From the sequence record NC_041916.1: a DNA stretch of 64,000 nucleotides; one strand, written 5' to 3'. The first letter of the stretch is position 1. The number at the start of each line of letters is the position of its first letter. The translations under genes and the position numbers were made by a program. This document shows positions 43,344-58,827 of this stretch, piece by piece. The notes beneath the pieces were generated by a model. The model saw only the letters and a program-made list of their open reading frames with translations, searched no databases and had not been told where the DNA came from.

Positions 43344-44075
43344 TTATTGCGGATCAATGGCATCCAATTGTTCTGGTGTAAGTTCTAGACGAGCTTCACC
43401 AAAGATAACAATACGACCCACCAATGCTTCCATAGCGTGAATCATGTTCAACATGCGTTCACAATCCCACTTAAGACTCCAAAGATAAAGTCCTTTAGTG
43501 TCCTCACGACGAGCCACATCAATGATGCACTCTTTCATCAGCTCTAAGCTGTAACCGTTTGAAAGGTAATCACCTTCTGGTTCCAACTCTTCCCAATGAA
43601 CGTCTTTACGACCTTCATAAGCAGGTGAGCGAAGGTGACCTTTGAAACGAGCTAAGTCACGGTACAAACAAATGGCTTTGTGATTATTAGTCTCAGTCGG
43701 ATTAGCTTGCAAACGTTTGATGGTGTACGCAATCATCAGTTCAGCAAGTTCGTAGTAAGTTCTAAGAATCGCCCGACCTTTGTTAATGACACTCAAATCC
43801 ACGTAACCATTGTTGCTGCGTAAACGAACACAATAACGGAACTGATCGCTGTTGATCGAAGAAGCCACTTTAGTTGCACGTAGTTTGATTTCACGAATCT
43901 CACTAGGCAATGCTTCCGCAACCTTCGCCATTTCCAACACTTGTTCAAGTGAAGTCGGTTTCTTCAGTGTTTCCATTAAGAGGTTAGACTTTTCTAGAAA
44001 GTCCTCCACGAACGGTTCAAACTCACGAACATCATTACGAAGATCACGGTAACGACGGTTGATTTCACGTATCAT
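43344..44075 (-). CDS. Hypothetical protein (243 aa)
   Basis: TAATG coupling to upstream gene. Confidence 0.75.
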   Translation of the reverse strand: MIREINRRYRDLRNDVREFEPFVEDFLEKSNLLMETLKKPTSLEQVLEMAKVAEALPSEIREIKLRATKVASSINSDQFRYCVRLRSNNGYVDLSVINKGRAILRTYYELAELMIAYTIKRLQANPTETNNHKAICLYRDLARFKGHLRSPAYEGRKDVHWEELEPEGDYLSNGYSLELMKECIIDVARREDTKGLYLWSLKWDCERMLNMIHAMEALVGRIVIFGEARLELTPEQLDAIDPQ

Positions 44076-45523
44076 TACAAATTCACTCCCATGTTTAAAG
44101 TACGAGACAGCGAGTTTAACTTACGTTTAACATCCGGGAACAGTGCATCGTAAATGCGTTGGAAACTACGGTCTTTATCATCGCGCGCATCTTTAGGAAC
44201 GCTTGCTAGATTACCGATAGGGATTTCAACACCTGTTTCTTTCTTATGCGCTTTACGGAAGTCATTACGTTCCTTAGCACGTTGGAAAGAGAACACCGTT
44301 AACAAGAACTGGTAACGTTGAGACCATTCAGCGAGGTATTGAATCTCAGCTGTGAACTTAAGCGCTACATCTGTTGATTGACGAAGAATCGACGTGTAGT
44401 TACCAACCGCACCAGTGTACAGACGGTAGGTAGCCAGAATGTCCGTGTTGTCACCCGGTAGTGCTTGCAAGAACGCAAGGTCGTCATGCTTAATCACTTG
44501 AGTCAACTTGTTCGCCAAGCTGCTGTCCAGAGTCAAGTTGAACCAGTCCGGGTTATCAACGATTTGTTGACGGATGTTAGAACCAGTACGAGACAGTGCA
44601 ACAAAGTCTTCGACCTTCACATCATCTTTAGAGACTTGCATTAGGTTCTGCATAGCCTTAGTGGATTCTGCGAATAACTTATCGTCATCCAGATTACCTG
44701 AAGTGCGATCAGTCATAATACCTAACAACTTAACGTAGTTACGCTGCAACTTTTGTTGTTGGATGTTTTGAGCAATCATGTCCATCACATCCGCAACCCA
44801 TTCCGCTTTGTCTTTGTTTGTTAACGAATCGTCTTTAGCACGTTTACGAAGACGACCGATAGACGAAGCGAAACGTTGGTCTAAGCGCTGGATACTGCCT
44901 TCTTGACGGTTGATCTCCGCAATGAAGTCTTTAAGTGCAGGAAGTGCTTCTTGCAGTTTAGCCGCTGCTTCCAAAGTAGTTTGGTTACGAGCACGGAGTG
45001 TGCGCACTACGGAAATACGACGACTGCTAACTGGGTCTTTACCAAAGAGTTCTTTCACGTCCAAGACGTTAAGCTCTGGACCGCCCATCTCTACCAGCTT
45101 GGATTCGATGTCACGTAACATTTCATCAGCTTTAGCGATTTCACGACCATCCGTAAAGAAGCTGGAGATACGTCGGAACTGTGCCATCATCCATTTGGCC
45201 GCATTAGAGATCATCTCAATAACACGACGAACGAATTCAGTGATGCCGTTAGAAATGCTTTCTAGGAAAGACTCACCACCCAACAGACCGTTCAACGTAG
45301 TACAACCCGGTTCAAAGCGTTCGGTACCTGCTACCTTCGCCGTCTCCAAAGCTTTCTTGCTAAGCTTACCTGTTTTTAGATACTCTGCCAGTGCAGCTGT
45401 TTCTTCAGGGTTTGTTACGTCATCGTAAGTTTCGTCTAGGTCGATCAACTGTTTGCGTTCAGTGTTACCCACACCGACCGTACCTGCTGTCCCCATGTCT
45501 ACGAAATTAGGAGATGTACTCAT
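44075..45523 (-). CDS. Internal head protein (gp86-like)
   Basis: AGTERF and GGESF sites followed by family-type helix; synteny. Confidence 0.7.
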   Translation of the reverse strand: MSTSPNFVDMGTAGTVGVGNTERKQLIDLDETYDDVTNPEETAALAEYLKTGKLSKKALETAKVAGTERFEPGCTTLNGLLGGESFLESISNGITEFVRRVIEMISNAAKWMMAQFRRISSFFTDGREIAKADEMLRDIESKLVEMGGPELNVLDVKELFGKDPVSSRRISVVRTLRARNQTTLEAAAKLQEALPALKDFIAEINRQEGSIQRLDQRFASSIGRLRKRAKDDSLTNKDKAEWVADVMDMIAQNIQQQKLQRNYVKLLGIMTDRTSGNLDDDKLFAESTKAMQNLMQVSKDDVKVEDFVALSRTGSNIRQQIVDNPDWFNLTLDSSLANKLTQVIKHDDLAFLQALPGDNTDILATYRLYTGAVGNYTSILRQSTDVALKFTAEIQYLAEWSQRYQFLLTVFSFQRAKERNDFRKAHKKETGVEIPIGNLASVPKDARDDKDRSFQRIYDALFPDVKRKLNSLSRTLNMGVNL

Positions 45524-47343: not shown

Positions 47344-49113
47344 ATGAGGAAGGCTGAAATGGATTATAGTTATACGCCGCCTTCGAGCGAATCTCCTGTT
47401 AAAGGAAAGGTGTGTAAACACGCTGTCTACGTTCCTTCAAAACGAGACAAGCTTAAAGATATGACGTTCATCAAACAAACAACCATCCATGAAAGTGGTG
47501 AACGCACTAATCAGTTTTTGAAAGTGGCGGATTACGTACGTTCATTTTACATCGTTCGTGAAAAATTCCGTAAGTTCGACCAGAAAAAAGATTACATCGA
47601 CAAACGTTTAGTGAAAGAGTATAAGTCAACACAAGCTCGTTTAGCAATGAACATTAAACGTGTCTTACACGGTATTAATGATCGTAACGCCGACTTAATG
47701 ATGTTGAAGAACAACCCGTATGTCTTTGGTTGTGAAACTCCAGTCCCGGTGTTGATCAAACACAAATACTTTGAACGTTATGAAGAGTTCCAAGAAACCG
47801 AACCATCCACACTAGCAGCATACGACGTGGAGACCGATATGGTCAACGGTAACGGTGAAGATGTCATCATGGCTTCCACTACGATGAAAGAGAAAATCTT
47901 TTTCTCTGTGGTTCGTAGTTTCTTTGATGGGATGTCTGACGAAGATATCTTAAAGGGATTAAAAGAATCGGAAGAAGCATTGATTGGTGAGCGTCTTAAG
48001 CGACGTAATGCTACAGTCCACTATAACTTAGTAGACACACAAACGGAATGTGTTGAGAACAACATTAAAGTTTGGCATATGTGGGAACCAGACTTCATCT
48101 CATCGTGGAACGCTTCGTACGATATGCAGCGTAACGAACACGCTTTGATCTTGGGTAACCGTGATTTAGAAGAAGTTTACTCAGACCCTAGCATTCCTCA
48201 AGAATTCCGTTACTACAAATACGACAAAGGTCGTACTCACAAACGTAAAGAGAATGGTGACTCCCAACCCTTAGAATGGCAAGAACAATACCCGACTGTT
48301 CGAGCTGCGGCTAAATGGCAATGGTTGGATGGTGCGAGTTTCTATGCGATTAAGAACGCTCCTAAAGGTAAGAAAGAATCTTACTCACTGGAATACACCG
48401 CACAAGACAACGGCATCGAGGGTAAGCTTTACACGGATAAAGGCGCACACTTAACACAAGGTAAAGGTGCTTGGCATAGATGGATGCAGAAACACGCTAA
48501 GTTCGAATACTGTATGTACAACATTTCAGATAACTTGGTTATCGAAGAAATGGATGAGAAAACCAACGACGTTGCACTGAACTTACCGCTCCTATTGAAA
48601 TCGACTGAGTTCTTTGATTACCCATCTCAACCGAAGTGTATTTCTAACGAACTATCTTTCATTGCCGCAGAACATGGTTACATCTGGGGTACGAAAGGTC
48701 GTGGTGGTAAAGATGAGTTGGATAAACACAAACCGACTCTGGGTGATTGGATTGCTTTATTAGAGACTGAGAAAAACGCAGACAACGGTAAAGCGATATT
48801 CATAGGGATGCCACACATACGTTCTAGAGGTCGAGGTCTTACCGATGACGTAGACGTAGAGGGTGCATACCCAACAGCCACAGTAGCGCTTAACGTTTCG
48901 AATAAGACAACCCGTATTGAAGCATGTGCGATACAAGGATTGAATCCATTAGAGTTCCGTGAAGTAGGTGTTAACTACGCTTCATCACCGAAAGCTAATG
49001 CGGTTAGTCTATGTAAAACTCTGCACCGATTCCCGGGCTTTGAAGAAATGGACGAAGTGTTCCCTGAACTGTTTGAACAAGAGTTTGGAACCCCACTTCC
49101 TATGGCAGCTTAA
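47344..49113 (+). CDS. Split family B DNA polymerase, N-terminal part: 3'-5' exonuclease plus motif A (gp82-like)
   Basis: Exo I AYDVETD, Exo II WNASYD, Exo III YNISD, polymerase motif A DVEGAYPT; true start probably ATG 47359. Confidence 0.85.
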   Translation: MRKAEMDYSYTPPSSESPVKGKVCKHAVYVPSKRDKLKDMTFIKQTTIHESGERTNQFLKVADYVRSFYIVREKFRKFDQKKDYIDKRLVKEYKSTQARLAMNIKRVLHGINDRNADLMMLKNNPYVFGCETPVPVLIKHKYFERYEEFQETEPSTLAAYDVETDMVNGNGEDVIMASTTMKEKIFFSVVRSFFDGMSDEDILKGLKESEEALIGERLKRRNATVHYNLVDTQTECVENNIKVWHMWEPDFISSWNASYDMQRNEHALILGNRDLEEVYSDPSIPQEFRYYKYDKGRTHKRKENGDSQPLEWQEQYPTVRAAAKWQWLDGASFYAIKNAPKGKKESYSLEYTAQDNGIEGKLYTDKGAHLTQGKGAWHRWMQKHAKFEYCMYNISDNLVIEEMDEKTNDVALNLPLLLKSTEFFDYPSQPKCISNELSFIAAEHGYIWGTKGRGGKDELDKHKPTLGDWIALLETEKNADNGKAIFIGMPHIRSRGRGLTDDVDVEGAYPTATVALNVSNKTTRIEACAIQGLNPLEFREVGVNYASSPKANAVSLCKTLHRFPGFEEMDEVFPELFEQEFGTPLPMAA

Positions 49114-49133: not shown

Positions 49134-49167
49134 TAACTACCTACCTCCTTGCGGAGGTAGGTAGTTA
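49134..49167. terminator. Bidirectional terminator
   Basis: 15-bp perfect stem TAACTACCTACCTCC-TTGC-GGAGGTAGGTAGTTA. Confidence 0.9.
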
Positions 49168-49174
49168 TTATTGA

Positions 49175-49525
49175 TTAATCGTCTTCTGGTTCTAGACCTG
49201 TCAACTCAGTGATCATTTCATTGATCTCTTCAGTTGTAGATTCTTCTTCTGTGCTGTCGCCACTGAATATTGCATTAGCAACAACTTTGATTAGAGCTGA
49301 AGCGATTGTACCGCCTGCTACCATGCTTGCGCCGTGGATAGCCATTGCTTTAGCATCGTAATCGAAATCTTCAGGTACTTCTGTGACAGCGATTTGTGCA
49401 GCACCAATAACACCGTGGTAAGCTGCGATGCCTTTAGAGTCGAAGATTGTAGCTGCTACTGTAGCGTTTACTGCTGTTGCTGCTGCTGTTACTAGACGTG
49501 CTTTAGTTGTTTTTGACATTTCCAT
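49175..49525 (-). CDS. Small Ala-rich putative membrane protein with acidic tail
   Basis: AAGGAA SD, three hydrophobic segments, own promoter and terminator. Confidence 0.8.
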   Translation of the reverse strand: MEMSKTTKARLVTAAATAVNATVAATIFDSKGIAAYHGVIGAAQIAVTEVPEDFDYDAKAMAIHGASMVAGGTIASALIKVVANAIFSGDSTEEESTTEEINEMITELTGLEPEDD

Positions 49526-50236: not shown

Positions 50237-50285
50237 CTTAATATCCTCTATAAGGGTTGGTGAACAAACATAGAATCGTAAAAAA

Positions 50286-50311
50286 GACACCTGCCCGTTA
50301 AGGCAGATGTC
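50286..50311 (-). terminator. Intrinsic terminator
   Basis: GACATCTGCC-TTAACG-GGCAGGTGTC then TTTTTT on minus strand. Confidence 0.8.
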
Positions 50312-50314
50312 GGT

Positions 50315-50764
50315 TTAGTTTGACCCGCTGGATAGATCGAATTGTTTAAACAATTCGAGTTGCTTATCGAGTTCCCTCGTCCCACTGTTATTCGCAGTTT
50401 TGTTGGCAAGTTCTTCTCGACGACTGGCTAACGCTTTAGCGCCTTCTCGCACACCTCTGGAGATCTGGTCAAGTTGTTTGGGGGTGAACTTTAAGTAAGT
50501 ATTAATGTCCCCAAATATCTCTTCCAATTCATAGAACGCAAACTCGTAAGCTCGCTGTTTTAGAGACCAAGGGTGTTCGTAATCGTAAGTTTCTTCATGG
50601 TATTGAATGTCGTCACCGGGTGAAGGGACGGTGGATTCAATTTGACCGTAACCAGCACGATACAACATGACCGCAATGGTTTGGTGTTGTACTTCTCCAA
50701 TCCCATCGGGGTCAAGGTTGTTTATCATCTTACGAAACTGATGGTAGCGATTGCCAGTCAGCAC
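50315..50764 (-). CDS. Conserved protein; probable C-terminal extension reached by -1 frameshift (GT-like)
   Basis: Weak GTG start; frame is -1 relative to upstream gene and open back to 50905. Confidence 0.6.
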   Translation of the reverse strand: MLTGNRYHQFRKMINNLDPDGIGEVQHQTIAVMLYRAGYGQIESTVPSPGDDIQYHEETYDYEHPWSLKQRAYEFAFYELEEIFGDINTYLKFTPKQLDQISRGVREGAKALASRREELANKTANNSGTRELDKQLELFKQFDLSSGSN

Positions 50765-50772
50765 ACCACCGT

Positions 50773-52419
50773 TTAATGGGTGGTTTGATCGATGATAGCT
50801 CGATTGATTGCTCGTTCTGCTAGCGCTTGGCGGGTCTGGACGAAAAAACTCATGAACGGGTCGATTGGTGTGATACCCAATGTCGTATGACCACCGTGGG
50901 TTTCTTTACCACACTTAGGACACACCGCGTTGGACATACCTACCGCCGTCGAAGACATTTCAGGACCGTGTTCAACACACCAACGAATTACCTTAGAGGT
51001 CGCTTCATCATCTGGGTCAATAACTCCGATAATGCCGTTGTAGAACTCGATTGGGTTTTCAGCTCGTGTGAAGACAGCCGGTTCTTCATCAGAACCTTCT
51101 TCTGGTTCAATGGTCAGCTTAGAACACCAGTGCATGTATTCCAATCCACGAACGGTGTCAATCAAGTTGGTTAAACGCTTATCGAACTCATCGTCGTCCA
51201 TAACGTCTGATCGGATTTGACGGATAGCCGGACCAATGTGCTCCATGAAGATATCGAACGCTAGGAAGTATTCACTGATGCTCGGTTGCTCAAAATCAAT
51301 GCGCTGTGAATCTTCATCAAACGTGATGTGCGCTTCTTCAGTGAATTTAAATTGGCTTTGAAGCGCAAGTACTTCTTCTGCGGTGTAACGCTTAGCGAAG
51401 TTCTTTAGGTTACCTAGGGCAGCCGCTTGTTCTTCACTTAGGAGCGTCTTATCATGCCAAAGCATGGTATCCGCATCTGCACGCAATACGTCAACCCAAT
51501 CACAACCCGTTTGGTTACAGTGAACCGTCATTGGGATGCCGCCAGCCATTACTTCACCCAACAGTTCCGTAAAGAGTGCACGGAAGTCACTGAGTTTAAT
51601 AAGACGAGCTAAGTCACGAGGTTCATCCACATCTGACACTGAGTGTTGTGTGATTTTCTCTGACAAGTATTCCCAGAACACACGGTAGATGGACGCACGG
51701 ATTAACGTTAGTGAGTTACCATTAAACGTACGAACGTAACCATGGATCTCTTTGTTAATGCGATCGACCACCTGACCCAGTTCTAACATGTCAGAAGGCT
51801 CAAGACGAATTTGCACAAACGAGTCACGCAACAACACATCGTAACCGTTCGGTGTACGACTACGACGTTGGGACGCACGCATCATGCGGTTGCTCAACGC
51901 CATTGCTTCATTCTTAGCACCCGGATAACGTTTAACGATATCAGATTCGAATTTACCGTCTGCAATTTCTGACGCATTTTCCCAAGGGCGAGTTAAGTAA
52001 CTCTTGTTTCGGAAATACGACAGTTCAACGTAGTTACGATGGAACGTTAAGAAATGACCCATCATCTCTTCCAGTTCCGGCTCAGGAATCCCCGGACGCA
52101 GTTCTTCACGCAACTCATTGTAGTTGTTCATAAGACGAGTGATTTCAGATTTACTTACTTCACCGTCATGAACCGCTGCTTTGTAACGTGACCAGCTGAG
52201 CACCAAACGCATCATTGGTTCGAATTCAGCTTTAGTCGTACCTAACATATAGTTAAGTGTTGGCGACGGTTCCGTAGGTTCTGGTTCGTGTTTCACTGGT
52301 TCAGTCTGAGGCACCGACGTTTTCATCGTGGTGTTTTCAGCAGTGTGTTCCTCACGAATCTTAGGACGTGGGGTTTCAATTGGATCAGTAGGTTGCATTC
52401 TTAGCGGCCTCAAGGTCAA
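50773..52419 (-). CDS. Conserved protein (gp77-like), putative tail/baseplate-hub assembly chaperone
   Basis: CNQTGC and CPKCG zinc-type motifs, C-terminal PFMSFF as in T4 gp26/gp51-like and myophage chaperones. Confidence 0.55.
   Translation of the reverse strand: MTLRPLRMQPTDPIETPRPKIREEHTAENTTMKTSVPQTEPVKHEPEPTEPSPTLNYMLGTTKAEFEPMMRLVLSWSRYKAAVHDGEVSKSEITRLMNNYNELREELRPGIPEPELEEMMGHFLTFHRNYVELSYFRNKSYLTRPWENASEIADGKFESDIVKRYPGAKNEAMALSNRMMRASQRRSRTPNGYDVLLRDSFVQIRLEPSDMLELGQVVDRINKEIHGYVRTFNGNSLTLIRASIYRVFWEYLSEKITQHSVSDVDEPRDLARLIKLSDFRALFTELLGEVMAGGIPMTVHCNQTGCDWVDVLRADADTMLWHDKTLLSEEQAAALGNLKNFAKRYTAEEVLALQSQFKFTEEAHITFDEDSQRIDFEQPSISEYFLAFDIFMEHIGPAIRQIRSDVMDDDEFDKRLTNLIDTVRGLEYMHWCSKLTIEPEEGSDEEPAVFTRAENPIEFYNGIIGVIDPDDEATSKVIRWCVEHGPEMSSTAVGMSNAVCPKCGKETHGGHTTLGITPIDPFMSFFVQTRQALAERAINRAIIDQTTH
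50842..50848 (-). promoter_or_regulatory. Putative -1 ribosomal slippery site T TTT TTC
   Basis: ATG AGT TTT TTC GTC in frame 0; X XXY YYZ heptamer in the correct phase. Confidence 0.6.
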
Positions 52420-57294: not shown

Positions 57295-58827
57295 TCAAAC
57301 AATGTGGTGGAAGGAATTGATGTTCTTATGTGACTTAGATTTCACTGAGAACAACTCTTTCCGTTTCTGGTGGTACTCTTTCTGTTTAGGGATAGAAGTA
57401 CACACAAAGTACACGAACTTCGGATCATCACCCGGATAGTTCTTCAATGGACGAGTACGACCTAACATCTGGTCGTTACGTTGACGGGATGAACATGCAT
57501 AAGGACTGAACGACACTGCCAAGTCTGGAATGTCTTTACCGGTACCACAAGACTGCGGCGTAGTAAACACGACTTGGTGTTCCATGTAGGACATTTCAGT
57601 CTCTTTGTTCTTAGACTCGGCGTTGGTGAACTTCCAGATATCCATGTCTGGATATGCTTTCTCGAAGTCCTCTTTCATCCGAGTTGCCATTTCCACCGTA
57701 CTAAAGAACCACAAACACTTCTGCCCTTCTTTGTGATCGTTCACGTAGAATTCTTCGAAGGCTTGCTTACACAACTCTAAGTATTGCAGGTAGAGTTTCG
57801 GGGTCTTCATTATGGCTTGTTCGTACTTGACGTGGGAATACCCACCAAAACCTTTGGTGTTGATTCGGTATTTCTGCATATCGATGTAGTGATGATACGC
57901 AATAACGTCAATGTACTTTTTGTACTCTGGCTCTTTGAGACGCATATTGTACGGATAGACATAACGATAAATGTCATTCACGAACGGGTCATCTGCTTTT
58001 AAGGTAGCGGACAACGCAATGGTTTTCTCAAAGTTACCGAACAGCATGGACATGTACACACGATAAATATCTTCGTGTGCTTCATCCATAATACGGAATC
58101 CAATCTCCATGTCGGTAAAGACTTCATCCAAACAAGGGATGTCTTCTTCACGTTCTCGCTTCAGATACGTATCATAACGAGTAAGAGGAAGGATGATGAT
58201 CTTAGGGTCAGCTCGACCAGACTTAATGGTCTCTGCGGCTTCTTCGATCTTACCATTCCCCACCAACATGATGTCTTCTGGATTCAGTTCAATAGACGCA
58301 CCAAGTGATTCGAACCAAATAGAGGTGTAACGAGGCAAGCACGTGATCAGCGTACGCTTACCAGTATTCACCATGGTGTGGGTCGCCATAAATGACTTAC
58401 CATCACCCGTTTGGGCGTTGTTTACTTTAACCGCACCTTCTTGCAATTGGTATTCACACCAATCAACCTGATGCGGTCTAGGTTCACCCCAACCCTCTTT
58501 CCACTTGAACTCTACGTCCTTCCCTTTAATGACCGGTTCATCTTTAATCTTCACACGTGCTTCTTTATAGCCCACCCCTTCCATAAACTGGATGAAGTCG
58601 TCTAACAAGCCCGCTGAGATACGGAATTCACTTCGGTCGTTATTCATGCGAGCAAAAGAATGCGTGACTACGGTTCGTTTCTGTCGAGTACCGGGAATAG
58701 GTACCTTTCCTAAACGATACAAGCGACGTCGGCAAAACGGCATAATGACATCTTGCACGAACGGCGCTTTGTAGTCTGTTATTCTTAGGTAAGTCCCGCC
58801 CTTCCATACCGTTACGGTTGAGCGCAT
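57295..58827 (-). CDS. SF2 DEAH-box helicase (phiKZ gp75-like)
   Basis: AQTGDGKS, MDEAH, LSAT, motif VI QMLGRTRP. Confidence 0.9.
   Translation of the reverse strand: MRSTVTVWKGGTYLRITDYKAPFVQDVIMPFCRRRLYRLGKVPIPGTRQKRTVVTHSFARMNNDRSEFRISAGLLDDFIQFMEGVGYKEARVKIKDEPVIKGKDVEFKWKEGWGEPRPHQVDWCEYQLQEGAVKVNNAQTGDGKSFMATHTMVNTGKRTLITCLPRYTSIWFESLGASIELNPEDIMLVGNGKIEEAAETIKSGRADPKIIILPLTRYDTYLKREREEDIPCLDEVFTDMEIGFRIMDEAHEDIYRVYMSMLFGNFEKTIALSATLKADDPFVNDIYRYVYPYNMRLKEPEYKKYIDVIAYHHYIDMQKYRINTKGFGGYSHVKYEQAIMKTPKLYLQYLELCKQAFEEFYVNDHKEGQKCLWFFSTVEMATRMKEDFEKAYPDMDIWKFTNAESKNKETEMSYMEHQVVFTTPQSCGTGKDIPDLAVSFSPYACSSRQRNDQMLGRTRPLKNYPGDDPKFVYFVCTSIPKQKEYHQKRKELFSVKSKSHKNINSFHHIV

Follow-up and report, generated by a model that had tools for sequence, protein, structure and literature searches.

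Vibrio phage pTD1 carries two adjacent genes that have been deposited as separate, and we have asked whether they are in reality a single gene whose reading frame is changed during expression. The genes lie in a 64,000-nucleotide (nt) stretch of sequence record NC_041916.1 (the window), which is 100% identical to Vibrio phage pTD1 (AP017972.1; Gorgonvirinae, Tidunavirus), such that a position in the AP017972.1 record is the window position + 62000. The upstream gene (50773..52398, minus strand, stop included) begins with an annotated ATG at 52398, encodes 541 amino acids (aa) and is deposited as a 'phage protein'. The downstream open reading frame (ORF) is deposited as a 149-aa 'hypothetical protein' at 50315-50764, starting with GTG, and the two are separated by 8 nt. 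An earlier analysis, made from the letters of the window (the sequence-only reading), had suggested that a programmed −1 frameshift fuses the two ORFs. A fusion by −1 slip is strongly supported by the comparisons described below, i.e., by the frame arrangement in 28 of 28 lineages, the lack of a conserved start codon, the selection acting on individual codons and the signs of coding in the −1 frame. We consider it very likely that some form of recoding at a run of T residues generates a long form of the protein. The account that we favor on the comparative data, as a probable one, is that the two deposited genes, of 541 aa and 149 aa, form a single recoded gene in which the frame is changed by a −1 slip of the ribosome.

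At the putative slip site the zero frame reads ATG AGT TTT TTC GTC. The heptamer T_TTT_TTC (50842..50848, minus strand) lies in the X_XXY_YYZ phase, exactly as had been claimed, and encodes the Phe-Phe pair F518, F519. The upstream protein had been taken to end here, at Met-Ser-Phe-Phe-Val; however, the zero frame continues for 22 codons past the slip site, to a TAA stop at 50775-50773. The length of 548 aa given for it is obtained by counting from a TTG at 52419, while the deposited ATG gives 541 aa; in the same way the computed length of the fusion is 701 aa from the TTG, as stated in the sequence-only reading, and 694 aa from the annotated ATG. Translation of the −1 frame from 50905 to 50315 gave 196 codons, free of stops until the terminal TAA at 50317-50315. 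Beyond the slip site this frame would provide an extension (50315..50842, minus strand) of 175 codons and a stop, in which a linker leads to a domain of ~100 aa and then to a charged C-terminal tail. The dual-coding overlap (50773..50841, minus strand) contains the last 22 zero-frame codons and the stop, and in the −1 frame it corresponds to the start of the Pro/Ser-rich linker. The first ATG, GTG or TTG of the −1 frame is the GTG at 50764, which is codon 27 after the slip; no well-spaced Shine-Dalgarno sequence was seen 5′ of it in pTD1, in agreement with the earlier claim. A terminator-like hairpin of 11 pairs, 6 of them G-C, with its T run (50280..50311, minus strand) begins 4 nt past the stop of the −1 frame, and no promoter-like or terminator-like site was found between the two ORFs on the coding (minus) strand. 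Because the terminator-like hairpin comes only after the −1 ORF, both reading frames would be carried on one transcript.

Is this arrangement confined to pTD1? We compared 28 lineages, consisting of 8 Gorgonvirinae genomes, 19 further clades and one metagenome contig. The Gorgonvirinae besides pTD1 were VP4B, phiKT1028, Vibrio phage 2 TSL-2019, PDCC-1, Aphrodite1, USC-1 and phiKT1019, the upstream proteins of which are 60-75% identical to that of pTD1. The further clades, with identities of 15-34%, were Miami, RisingSun, EL, FishSpeaker, Yubaba, OBP, PhiPA3, SPN3US, MJ359, Moabite, pEa_SNUABM_29, SL2 (Phikzvirus), Phabio, LucasX, Ea35-70, RsoM3USA, Yong MS32, Halocynthia phage JM-2012 and sm033. 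When the upstream protein was used as query, tblastn gave 117 phage records for the pTD1 sequence and 246 for that of PhiPA3; a profile search for further homologs returned the same 11 close relatives only, and alignment-based scans of viral contigs gave no genomes beyond those already compared.

All eight Gorgonvirinae genomes have TTTTTTC in phase, exactly 69 nt 5′ of the zero-frame stop; in each, the downstream ORF occupies the −1 frame, which is already open 5′ of the heptamer. In each of the 20 distant lineages a run of six, seven or eight T residues (T6, T7 or T8) is found 36-114 nt 5′ of the zero-frame stop. Taking the whole set, the T6-T8 run and a −1 frame that is open from before it are present in 28 of 28 lineages, the −1 ORF after the slip having 149-187 codons in every case, and 26 of the 28 have a T_TTT_TTN heptamer in phase. 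Conservation of the T6 run and the open frame in homologs had been put forward as the check on the original suggestion, and the alignment bears it out with a run of T6-T8. Within the 44 long ORFs of the 64-kb window the slip-site run is the only deep-lying run of T6 or longer. Since it is the sole such run, and since all the relatives examined conserve it at the level of codons, the signal at this site is far beyond chance. The conclusion confirmed by these sequence comparisons is that the observation is real and extends to the whole virus family.

Homopolymer runs are error-prone on some sequencing platforms, and a displaced frame in pTD1 might have been an artefact, either a sequencing error or a recent inactivating mutation, with the true gene being a single ORF. 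Yet 28 genomes, sequenced independently by many laboratories and on many platforms, show the same frame arrangement; this agreement of independent assemblies rules out a sequencing error, and the artefact as a whole can be given a negligible probability. Nor did large protein searches return a fused form in a single frame. None was found among 1.84 billion representative proteins searched with phmmer, with a reach of fairly close relatives, nor in a search of 5.8 billion clusters, nor among the 28 genomes that we read directly. In the former search the relatives of the −1 product were 100-166 aa in length; relatives of the upstream protein have 536-578 aa. As none of the relatives returned has the two parts in one frame, the split architecture has been retained, not fused, in every relative recovered.

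We have also considered that there are simply two genes, the downstream ORF using a start of its own or re-initiation, and the T run being kept only for the sake of the Phe-Phe pair. This is how the locus has been annotated. All 27 deposited records examined show two separate genes or leave the downstream ORF unannotated, and a joined feature appears in none of the 27. In addition, ~10 of the 28 genomes have an ATG 37-40 codons past the slip, and Miami has an annotated 3-nt ribosome binding site. However, no start codon in the extension is conserved across the 28 lineages. The first ATG, GTG or TTG of the −1 frame is found at codons 27-58 after the slip in the seven other Gorgonvirinae, and among these relatives depositors have picked six different starts for the ORF. 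The distant lineages have their first possible start at codons 19-86, the first ATG being located at codons 35-140. Four phages have their first ATG so late (codon 116 in Aphrodite1, 86 in SL2, 115 in Ea35-70 and 140 in JM-2012) that initiation there would delete most of the conserved domain. The deposited annotation of SL2 (L029:3066-3560), where the first ATG comes 86 codons after the T run, leaves the −1 extension ORF unannotated save for a 45-aa ORF at its end.

The extension products can be aligned across clades through linker, ~100-aa domain and charged tail. Among the Gorgonvirinae the −1 translations can be aligned beginning with the codon that directly follows the heptamer, and they share no conserved Met; in 16 of the 22 aligned extensions the second −1 codon encodes Pro. 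Moreover, all 28 lineages have the downstream ORF in the −1 frame, with the open stretch extending back beyond the T run, in contrast to what separate genes would lead one to expect. Where the globular part of the extension begins, a Met codon recurs (window 50726-50728 in pTD1) and is absent in other lineages; lying 37-40 codons after the slip, it could permit extra internal initiation in some phages.

The use of codons at the slip site also argues against two genes. The first Phe codon of the pair is TTT in 27 of 27 genomes, whereas elsewhere in the same ORFs TTT accounts for 6-59% of Phe codons; in RsoM3USA, the codon is used for 1 of the 16 Phe codons elsewhere in the ORF. The codon preceding the pair ends in T in 25 of the 27, compared with ~31% of codons generally, and none of the 27 upstream ORFs contains a second T6 run. 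TTT and the preceding T are fixed, in other words, against each genome's own codon preference. Invariance of Phe-Phe cannot by itself force the T run, because encoding Phe-Phe requires neither TTT nor a preceding T. Over the window, ORFs of at least 150 aa contain 4 runs of T6 or longer on the sense strand, against 10.7 ± 2.9 in synonymous-codon shuffles. From the fixation of the codons and the rarity relative to the shuffles, we deduce that selection maintains the T run at this single position and that such runs are avoided in other places. Three of the four runs fall within the first three codons of ATG-defined ORFs, so that they probably precede the true start.

If ribosomes enter the −1 frame at the slip site, then that frame should evolve as coding sequence upstream of any start codon. 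We counted substitutions by a Nei-Gojobori type of method in the eight Gorgonvirinae genomes. Over 15 codons that run across the zero-frame stop and take in the stretch annotated as 'intergenic', the ratio of non-synonymous to synonymous differences per site (pN/pS) in the −1 frame was 0.36. The other two frames gave 1.35 and 0.95 over a comparable stretch of 14 codons just past the zero-frame stop. The synonymous component (pS) of the zero frame was 0.56-0.73 in six windows upstream of the site and 0.39 in the overlap, and the first 30 nt 3′ of the site are 89% identical among the eight genomes. On these counts, the −1 frame is under purifying selection in a stretch that is annotated as intergenic. 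Because the coding signature is present there, the −1 frame is evidently translated upstream of any usable start codon. Together with the variable starts, the frame arrangement and the fixed codons, this makes the existence of two independent genes improbable.

How, then, is the frame changed? The site has the heptamer in phase, an open −1 frame leading into an ORF without a conserved start, and conservation beyond the needs of the protein, all as expected for −1 ribosomal frameshifting. A stimulatory stem-loop or pseudoknot, or a Shine-Dalgarno-like element, is missing, and such elements are not obligatory for this class of site. We know of no need for a stimulator in the slip of lambda G/GT. 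The heptamer itself is of a favorable kind. In Escherichia coli, Sharma et al. (PMC4066793) placed H_HH.U_UU.Y heptamers in the group of most efficient −1 motifs, and reported that U_UU.U_UU.C and U_UU.U_UU.U shift at >0.1% without a stimulator.

Several observations weigh against a slip on the ribosome as the source of the long form. RNAalifold applied to the 110 nt 3′ of the site in the eight close genomes gave 0 conserved pairs. The segment 3′ of the site in pTD1 folds no better than shuffled sequences (z = −0.42), and the folding z-scores for the 70 nt after the run in 20 clades are spread about zero, between +1.96 and −2.6. An off-phase G_TTT_TTT_A is carried by PhiPA3 and Phabio, two lineages related to one another, and several lineages have T8; the former would fit slippage by an RNA polymerase too, and the latter would fit it as well as a slip of the ribosome. 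The ATG located 37-40 codons after the slip in ~10 of the 28 genomes means that the extension domain alone might also be made. Lastly, the long form is a prediction from comparative sequence evidence.

The alternative that these points bring forward is transcriptional slippage, whereby the phage RNA polymerase stutters on the run of A residues in the template and adds one U, leading to the same long isoform. The architecture of the gene and both of its products would be unaltered, and only the step at which the frame is changed would differ. Because there is no conserved RNA structure 3′ of the site this is a live rival. It also gains from the variation in run length between T6, T7 and T8, from the two lineages that lack a perfect tandem-tRNA phase, and from the general avoidance of runs of T6 or longer in the coding sequence of the window. 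UUUUUUU is likewise under-represented in all three frames of E. coli genes; transcriptional slippage and a high rate of indel mutation are put forward there as possible causes (PMC4066793).

Two general facts pull in opposite directions here. Phages related to phiKZ transcribe their genes with unusual multisubunit RNA polymerases of their own, which leaves room for slippage; on the other hand T6 is shorter than runs known to cause useful slippage by bacterial RNA polymerase, and half of the lineages have T6 only. Further against the polymerase, 26 of the 28 lineages carry the heptamer in the exact phase required for tandem tRNA slippage. Where the run is T6, NNT_TTT_TTC is found in 13 genomes and TTT_TTT in 2, both of which encode Phe-Phe, with the reservation that shared ancestry weakens the count. 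The retention of phase and the excess of in-phase T6 runs favor the ribosome, to judge from these sequences, and the argument is weakened by shared ancestry and by the fixed Phe-Phe. Balancing these considerations, we regard transcriptional slippage as rather unlikely, and a −1 slip of the ribosome as the probable event.

For the slip on the ribosome, the following scheme can be drawn from the comparative evidence, and the ratio of the two forms, like their function, is put forward as a suggestion. Most ribosomes would read the zero frame through both Phe codons and terminate 22 codons later, giving a short form of ~61 kDa. A minority would slip back by one base, with Phe tRNAs positioned on T_TTT_TTC, and translate 175 codons in the −1 frame, the product being a long form of ~78 kDa. 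This form would have the same 519-residue body, followed by the Pro/Ser-rich linker, the extra domain of ~100 aa and the charged tail. Since neither a conserved RNA structure nor, in pTD1, a Shine-Dalgarno-like element upstream of the slip site was found, the slip appears to be unstimulated. With no RNA stimulator it is probably inefficient, and would set a fixed, skewed ratio of short to long forms.

What kind of protein is recoded in this way? The zero-frame gene is the Chimalliviridae core gene cg18, of the family of phiKZ gp077, PhiPA3 gp074, EL ORF047 and SPN3US gp39. The orthology to the phiKZ and SPN3US proteins had been correctly assigned from the sequence, and is supported by the SPN3US record, by the notes in the PhiPA3 record (HQ630627), which equate gp074 with phiKZ gp077, 201phi2-1 gp136 and EL ORF047, and by Table S3 of Prichard et al. 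(PMC10299810). There cg18 is listed as a 'hypothetical protein' corresponding to phiKZ gp077, Goslar gp081 and RAY gp267, and the gene is reported also outside the phages that encode chimallin (PMC10299810). The upstream protein of pTD1 matches PHROG family phrog_4585 with an expect value (E) of 1e-175, and the extension matches phrog_24181.

Two pairs of cysteine residues are invariant in 16 homologs at 15-76% identity. The first comprises C294 and C299 (51502..51519, minus strand), and the second C493-P-x-C496 (50911..50922, minus strand), 22 codons upstream of the slip site. We infer that together they probably form a four-Cys zinc site. Otherwise a Pro, the Phe-Phe pair of the slip site and a few more residues are invariant in this set. 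At the N terminus a motif at about residues 18-24 (window 52250-52398) is conserved in close relatives and is followed by a variable, Pro/Glu/Thr-rich stretch that is predicted to be disordered; its composition probably explains the 'ZipA-like' labels given to homologs.

Searches of Pfam, PHROGs, NCBIfam and the Protein Data Bank (PDB) by sequence, using single proteins and profiles of both parts, gave unannotated phage families only, and the upstream protein had no sequence relative among the solved structures of the PDB. We therefore turn to predicted structure. An AlphaFold2 model of the full-length protein had low confidence, with a predicted local distance difference test score (pLDDT) of 51.7. 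For residues 240-541 the confidence was medium (pLDDT 63.7; predicted template modeling score 0.63). In a Foldseek comparison of the latter model with predicted viral structures the protein's own family ranked first, and the best match outside it was a 'Baseplate hub assembly protein, bacteriophage T4-like' with E = 1e-4. Six weaker matches (E 0.02-0.7) were labeled as baseplate protein, hub subunit, hub assembly chaperone or hub assembly catalyst. The poorer full-length model had already hinted at the same T4-like hub assembly match, and two depositors have independently labeled homologs 'baseplate hub' and 'putative baseplate protein'. These results provide a moderate lead to a possible relationship between the conserved C-terminal half, which contains the four-Cys site, and the T4-type baseplate hub assembly proteins, and a role in assembly of the baseplate hub is a reasonable working hypothesis, given the confidence of the model. 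The likeness to proteins of the T4 gp26/gp51 type that the sequence-only reading proposed has thus found moderate structural support, without membership of the sequence family.

A number of results count against such a role and weaken the lead. Sequence comparison of the 16 diverse homologs gave no link to baseplate or chaperone families, in searches extended to E = 10 for Pfam and to E = 1 for NCBIfam. The Foldseek matches to baseplate proteins have template modeling (TM) scores of only 0.2-0.35 on a medium-confidence model, and a fold search of the PDB with the full-length model found nothing. The locus is not part of a tail module: the gene for the virion RNA polymerase beta subunit and a gp79-like gene are divergent from cg18, and the gene for a DNA polymerase is convergent. 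The homolog in Churi is listed among proteins detected early in infection, though proteins brought in with the virion may be on the same list (PMC11849849). In the paper on the Goslar virion the text does not mention gp081, which is a weak hint that this protein is absent from the virion as modeled.

The best-known precedent for recoding in phage morphogenesis is that of lambda, where a low-level −1 slip generates G and GT in a proportion of ~30:1, the shared part binding the tape measure protein and the extension binding the tube protein (PMC5009743). This frameshift is conserved in the tail assembly chaperones of long-tailed phages (Levin 1993; Xu, Hendrix and Duda 2004, 2013, as reviewed in PMC5009743). 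Both lambda gpG/gpGT and, on our reading, cg18 have a −1 slip close to the gene's 3′ terminus, giving a minority long form in which the body of the short form acquires a C-terminal domain. In both the ratio of products would be fixed, there is no strong RNA stimulator apparent, and the arrangement is conserved while the sequences diverge. However, the body of cg18 has 519 residues and a four-Cys site, compared with a chaperone of ~100-150 aa, and the gene is found between polymerase genes and not between those for the tube and tape measure proteins. The sequence-only reading had proposed that this was a G/GT-type tail assembly chaperone locus. We reject that family assignment as unsupported, on the grounds of size (519-541 aa), the lack of a family match in Pfam, PHROGs, NCBIfam and the PDB, and the position of the gene; and no search confirmed a resemblance of the downstream ORF to T-type extensions. 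By analogy, the proposed recoding of cg18 is best seen as the logic of lambda G/GT without membership of its family.

Other systems share some of these features. Phage P2, a myovirus, makes E and E′ by a −1 frameshift on a T6G run read by Phe tRNA, with no well-defined stimulator. The shift proposed for cg18 would likewise occur on six T residues read by Phe tRNA without such a stimulator; P2 E and E′ are, in contrast, small chaperones of G/GT type that adjoin the tape measure gene, and are unrelated to the cg18 protein in size and sequence. The hub assembly proteins of the T4 gp26/gp51 kind carry the labels that best match the predicted fold of residues 240-541 outside its own family, and if the role in the hub is correct then they and cg18 would both be morphogenetic proteins of large contractile-tailed phages. 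No sequence relationship to them was detected, the TM scores being 0.2-0.35, and the cg18 protein is about twice as long; to our knowledge, no frameshift has been described for the genes of T4. The bacterial dnaX gene, encoding tau and gamma, also has two isoforms with a common N-terminal body and a −1 slip on a homopolymer-rich heptamer. The shift in dnaX leads to the shorter product and needs strong stimulators, whereas that in cg18 would lead to the longer product and no stimulator was found. Some bacteria arrive at the same pair of dnaX isoforms by transcriptional slippage.

If the kinship with the T4-type hub assembly proteins is correct, the pair of isoforms would work as an assembly factor: the body would bind one partner, and the extension, present on few copies, would recruit a second. 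A bolder reading is that the recoding is universal to this core gene of nucleus-forming jumbo phages, and that the long isoform is the missing functional counterpart of the G/GT chaperone system for the contractile tails of T4-like and phiKZ-like phages. A hub assembly protein would then link assembly of the hub or tape measure with another partner, slippage fixing the ratio, and this might be slippage at the phage RNA polymerase. We offer this bolder reading tentatively, and consider it doubtful as it stands.

The wider surroundings of the gene can be described briefly. The polymerase-gene synteny around cg18 is also found in its relatives. A 'phage tail length tape-measure protein' of 482 aa (BAW98308) is deposited at window 44075-45523 (minus strand), 5 kb away. 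Its only family match is phrog_14541 ('virion structural protein, head and packaging'), with none in Pfam, and its length appears small for a jumbo-phage tape measure; we have dropped this protein as evidence for a tail context, since the label is backed by no family search. A perfect hairpin with a stem of 15 bp (window 49134-49167) reads as a terminator on both strands, and is located between the convergent DNA polymerase gene (47344-49113, plus strand) and a gene encoding 116 aa (49175-49525, minus strand). The large subunit of the terminase (window ~57295-58827; record 119295-120827) is annotated as containing an intein.

Has this recoding been described before? The statement in the sequence-only reading that no frameshift of this kind was known for the Chimalliviridae agrees with what we found in the openly searchable literature. 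There we found no published report of recoding in cg18, and a review of recoding from 2016 (PMC5009743) mentions neither phiKZ nor jumbo phages. Literature matches to 'gp77' and 'gp136' concerned different proteins of other phages.

If the slip is real, several hundred deposited genomes of jumbo phages mis-annotate the locus, as two genes or, in the manner of the phiKZ-like SL2, as a gene next to empty space. These would include the model phages phiKZ, PhiPA3, 201phi2-1, Goslar, EL, OBP and SPN3US. Because the long product is in no database, proteomic, transposon-sequencing and structural studies have never searched for it. A second and larger product would be added to that of cg18, and programmed frameshifting in phage morphogenesis would be extended beyond the G/GT family to an unrelated and much larger protein. 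The question of mechanism, ribosome or polymerase, is posed in phages that separate transcription from translation and have RNA polymerases of their own. Finally, the slip would provide a testable handle on a hypothetical protein that is conserved across a whole family of viruses.

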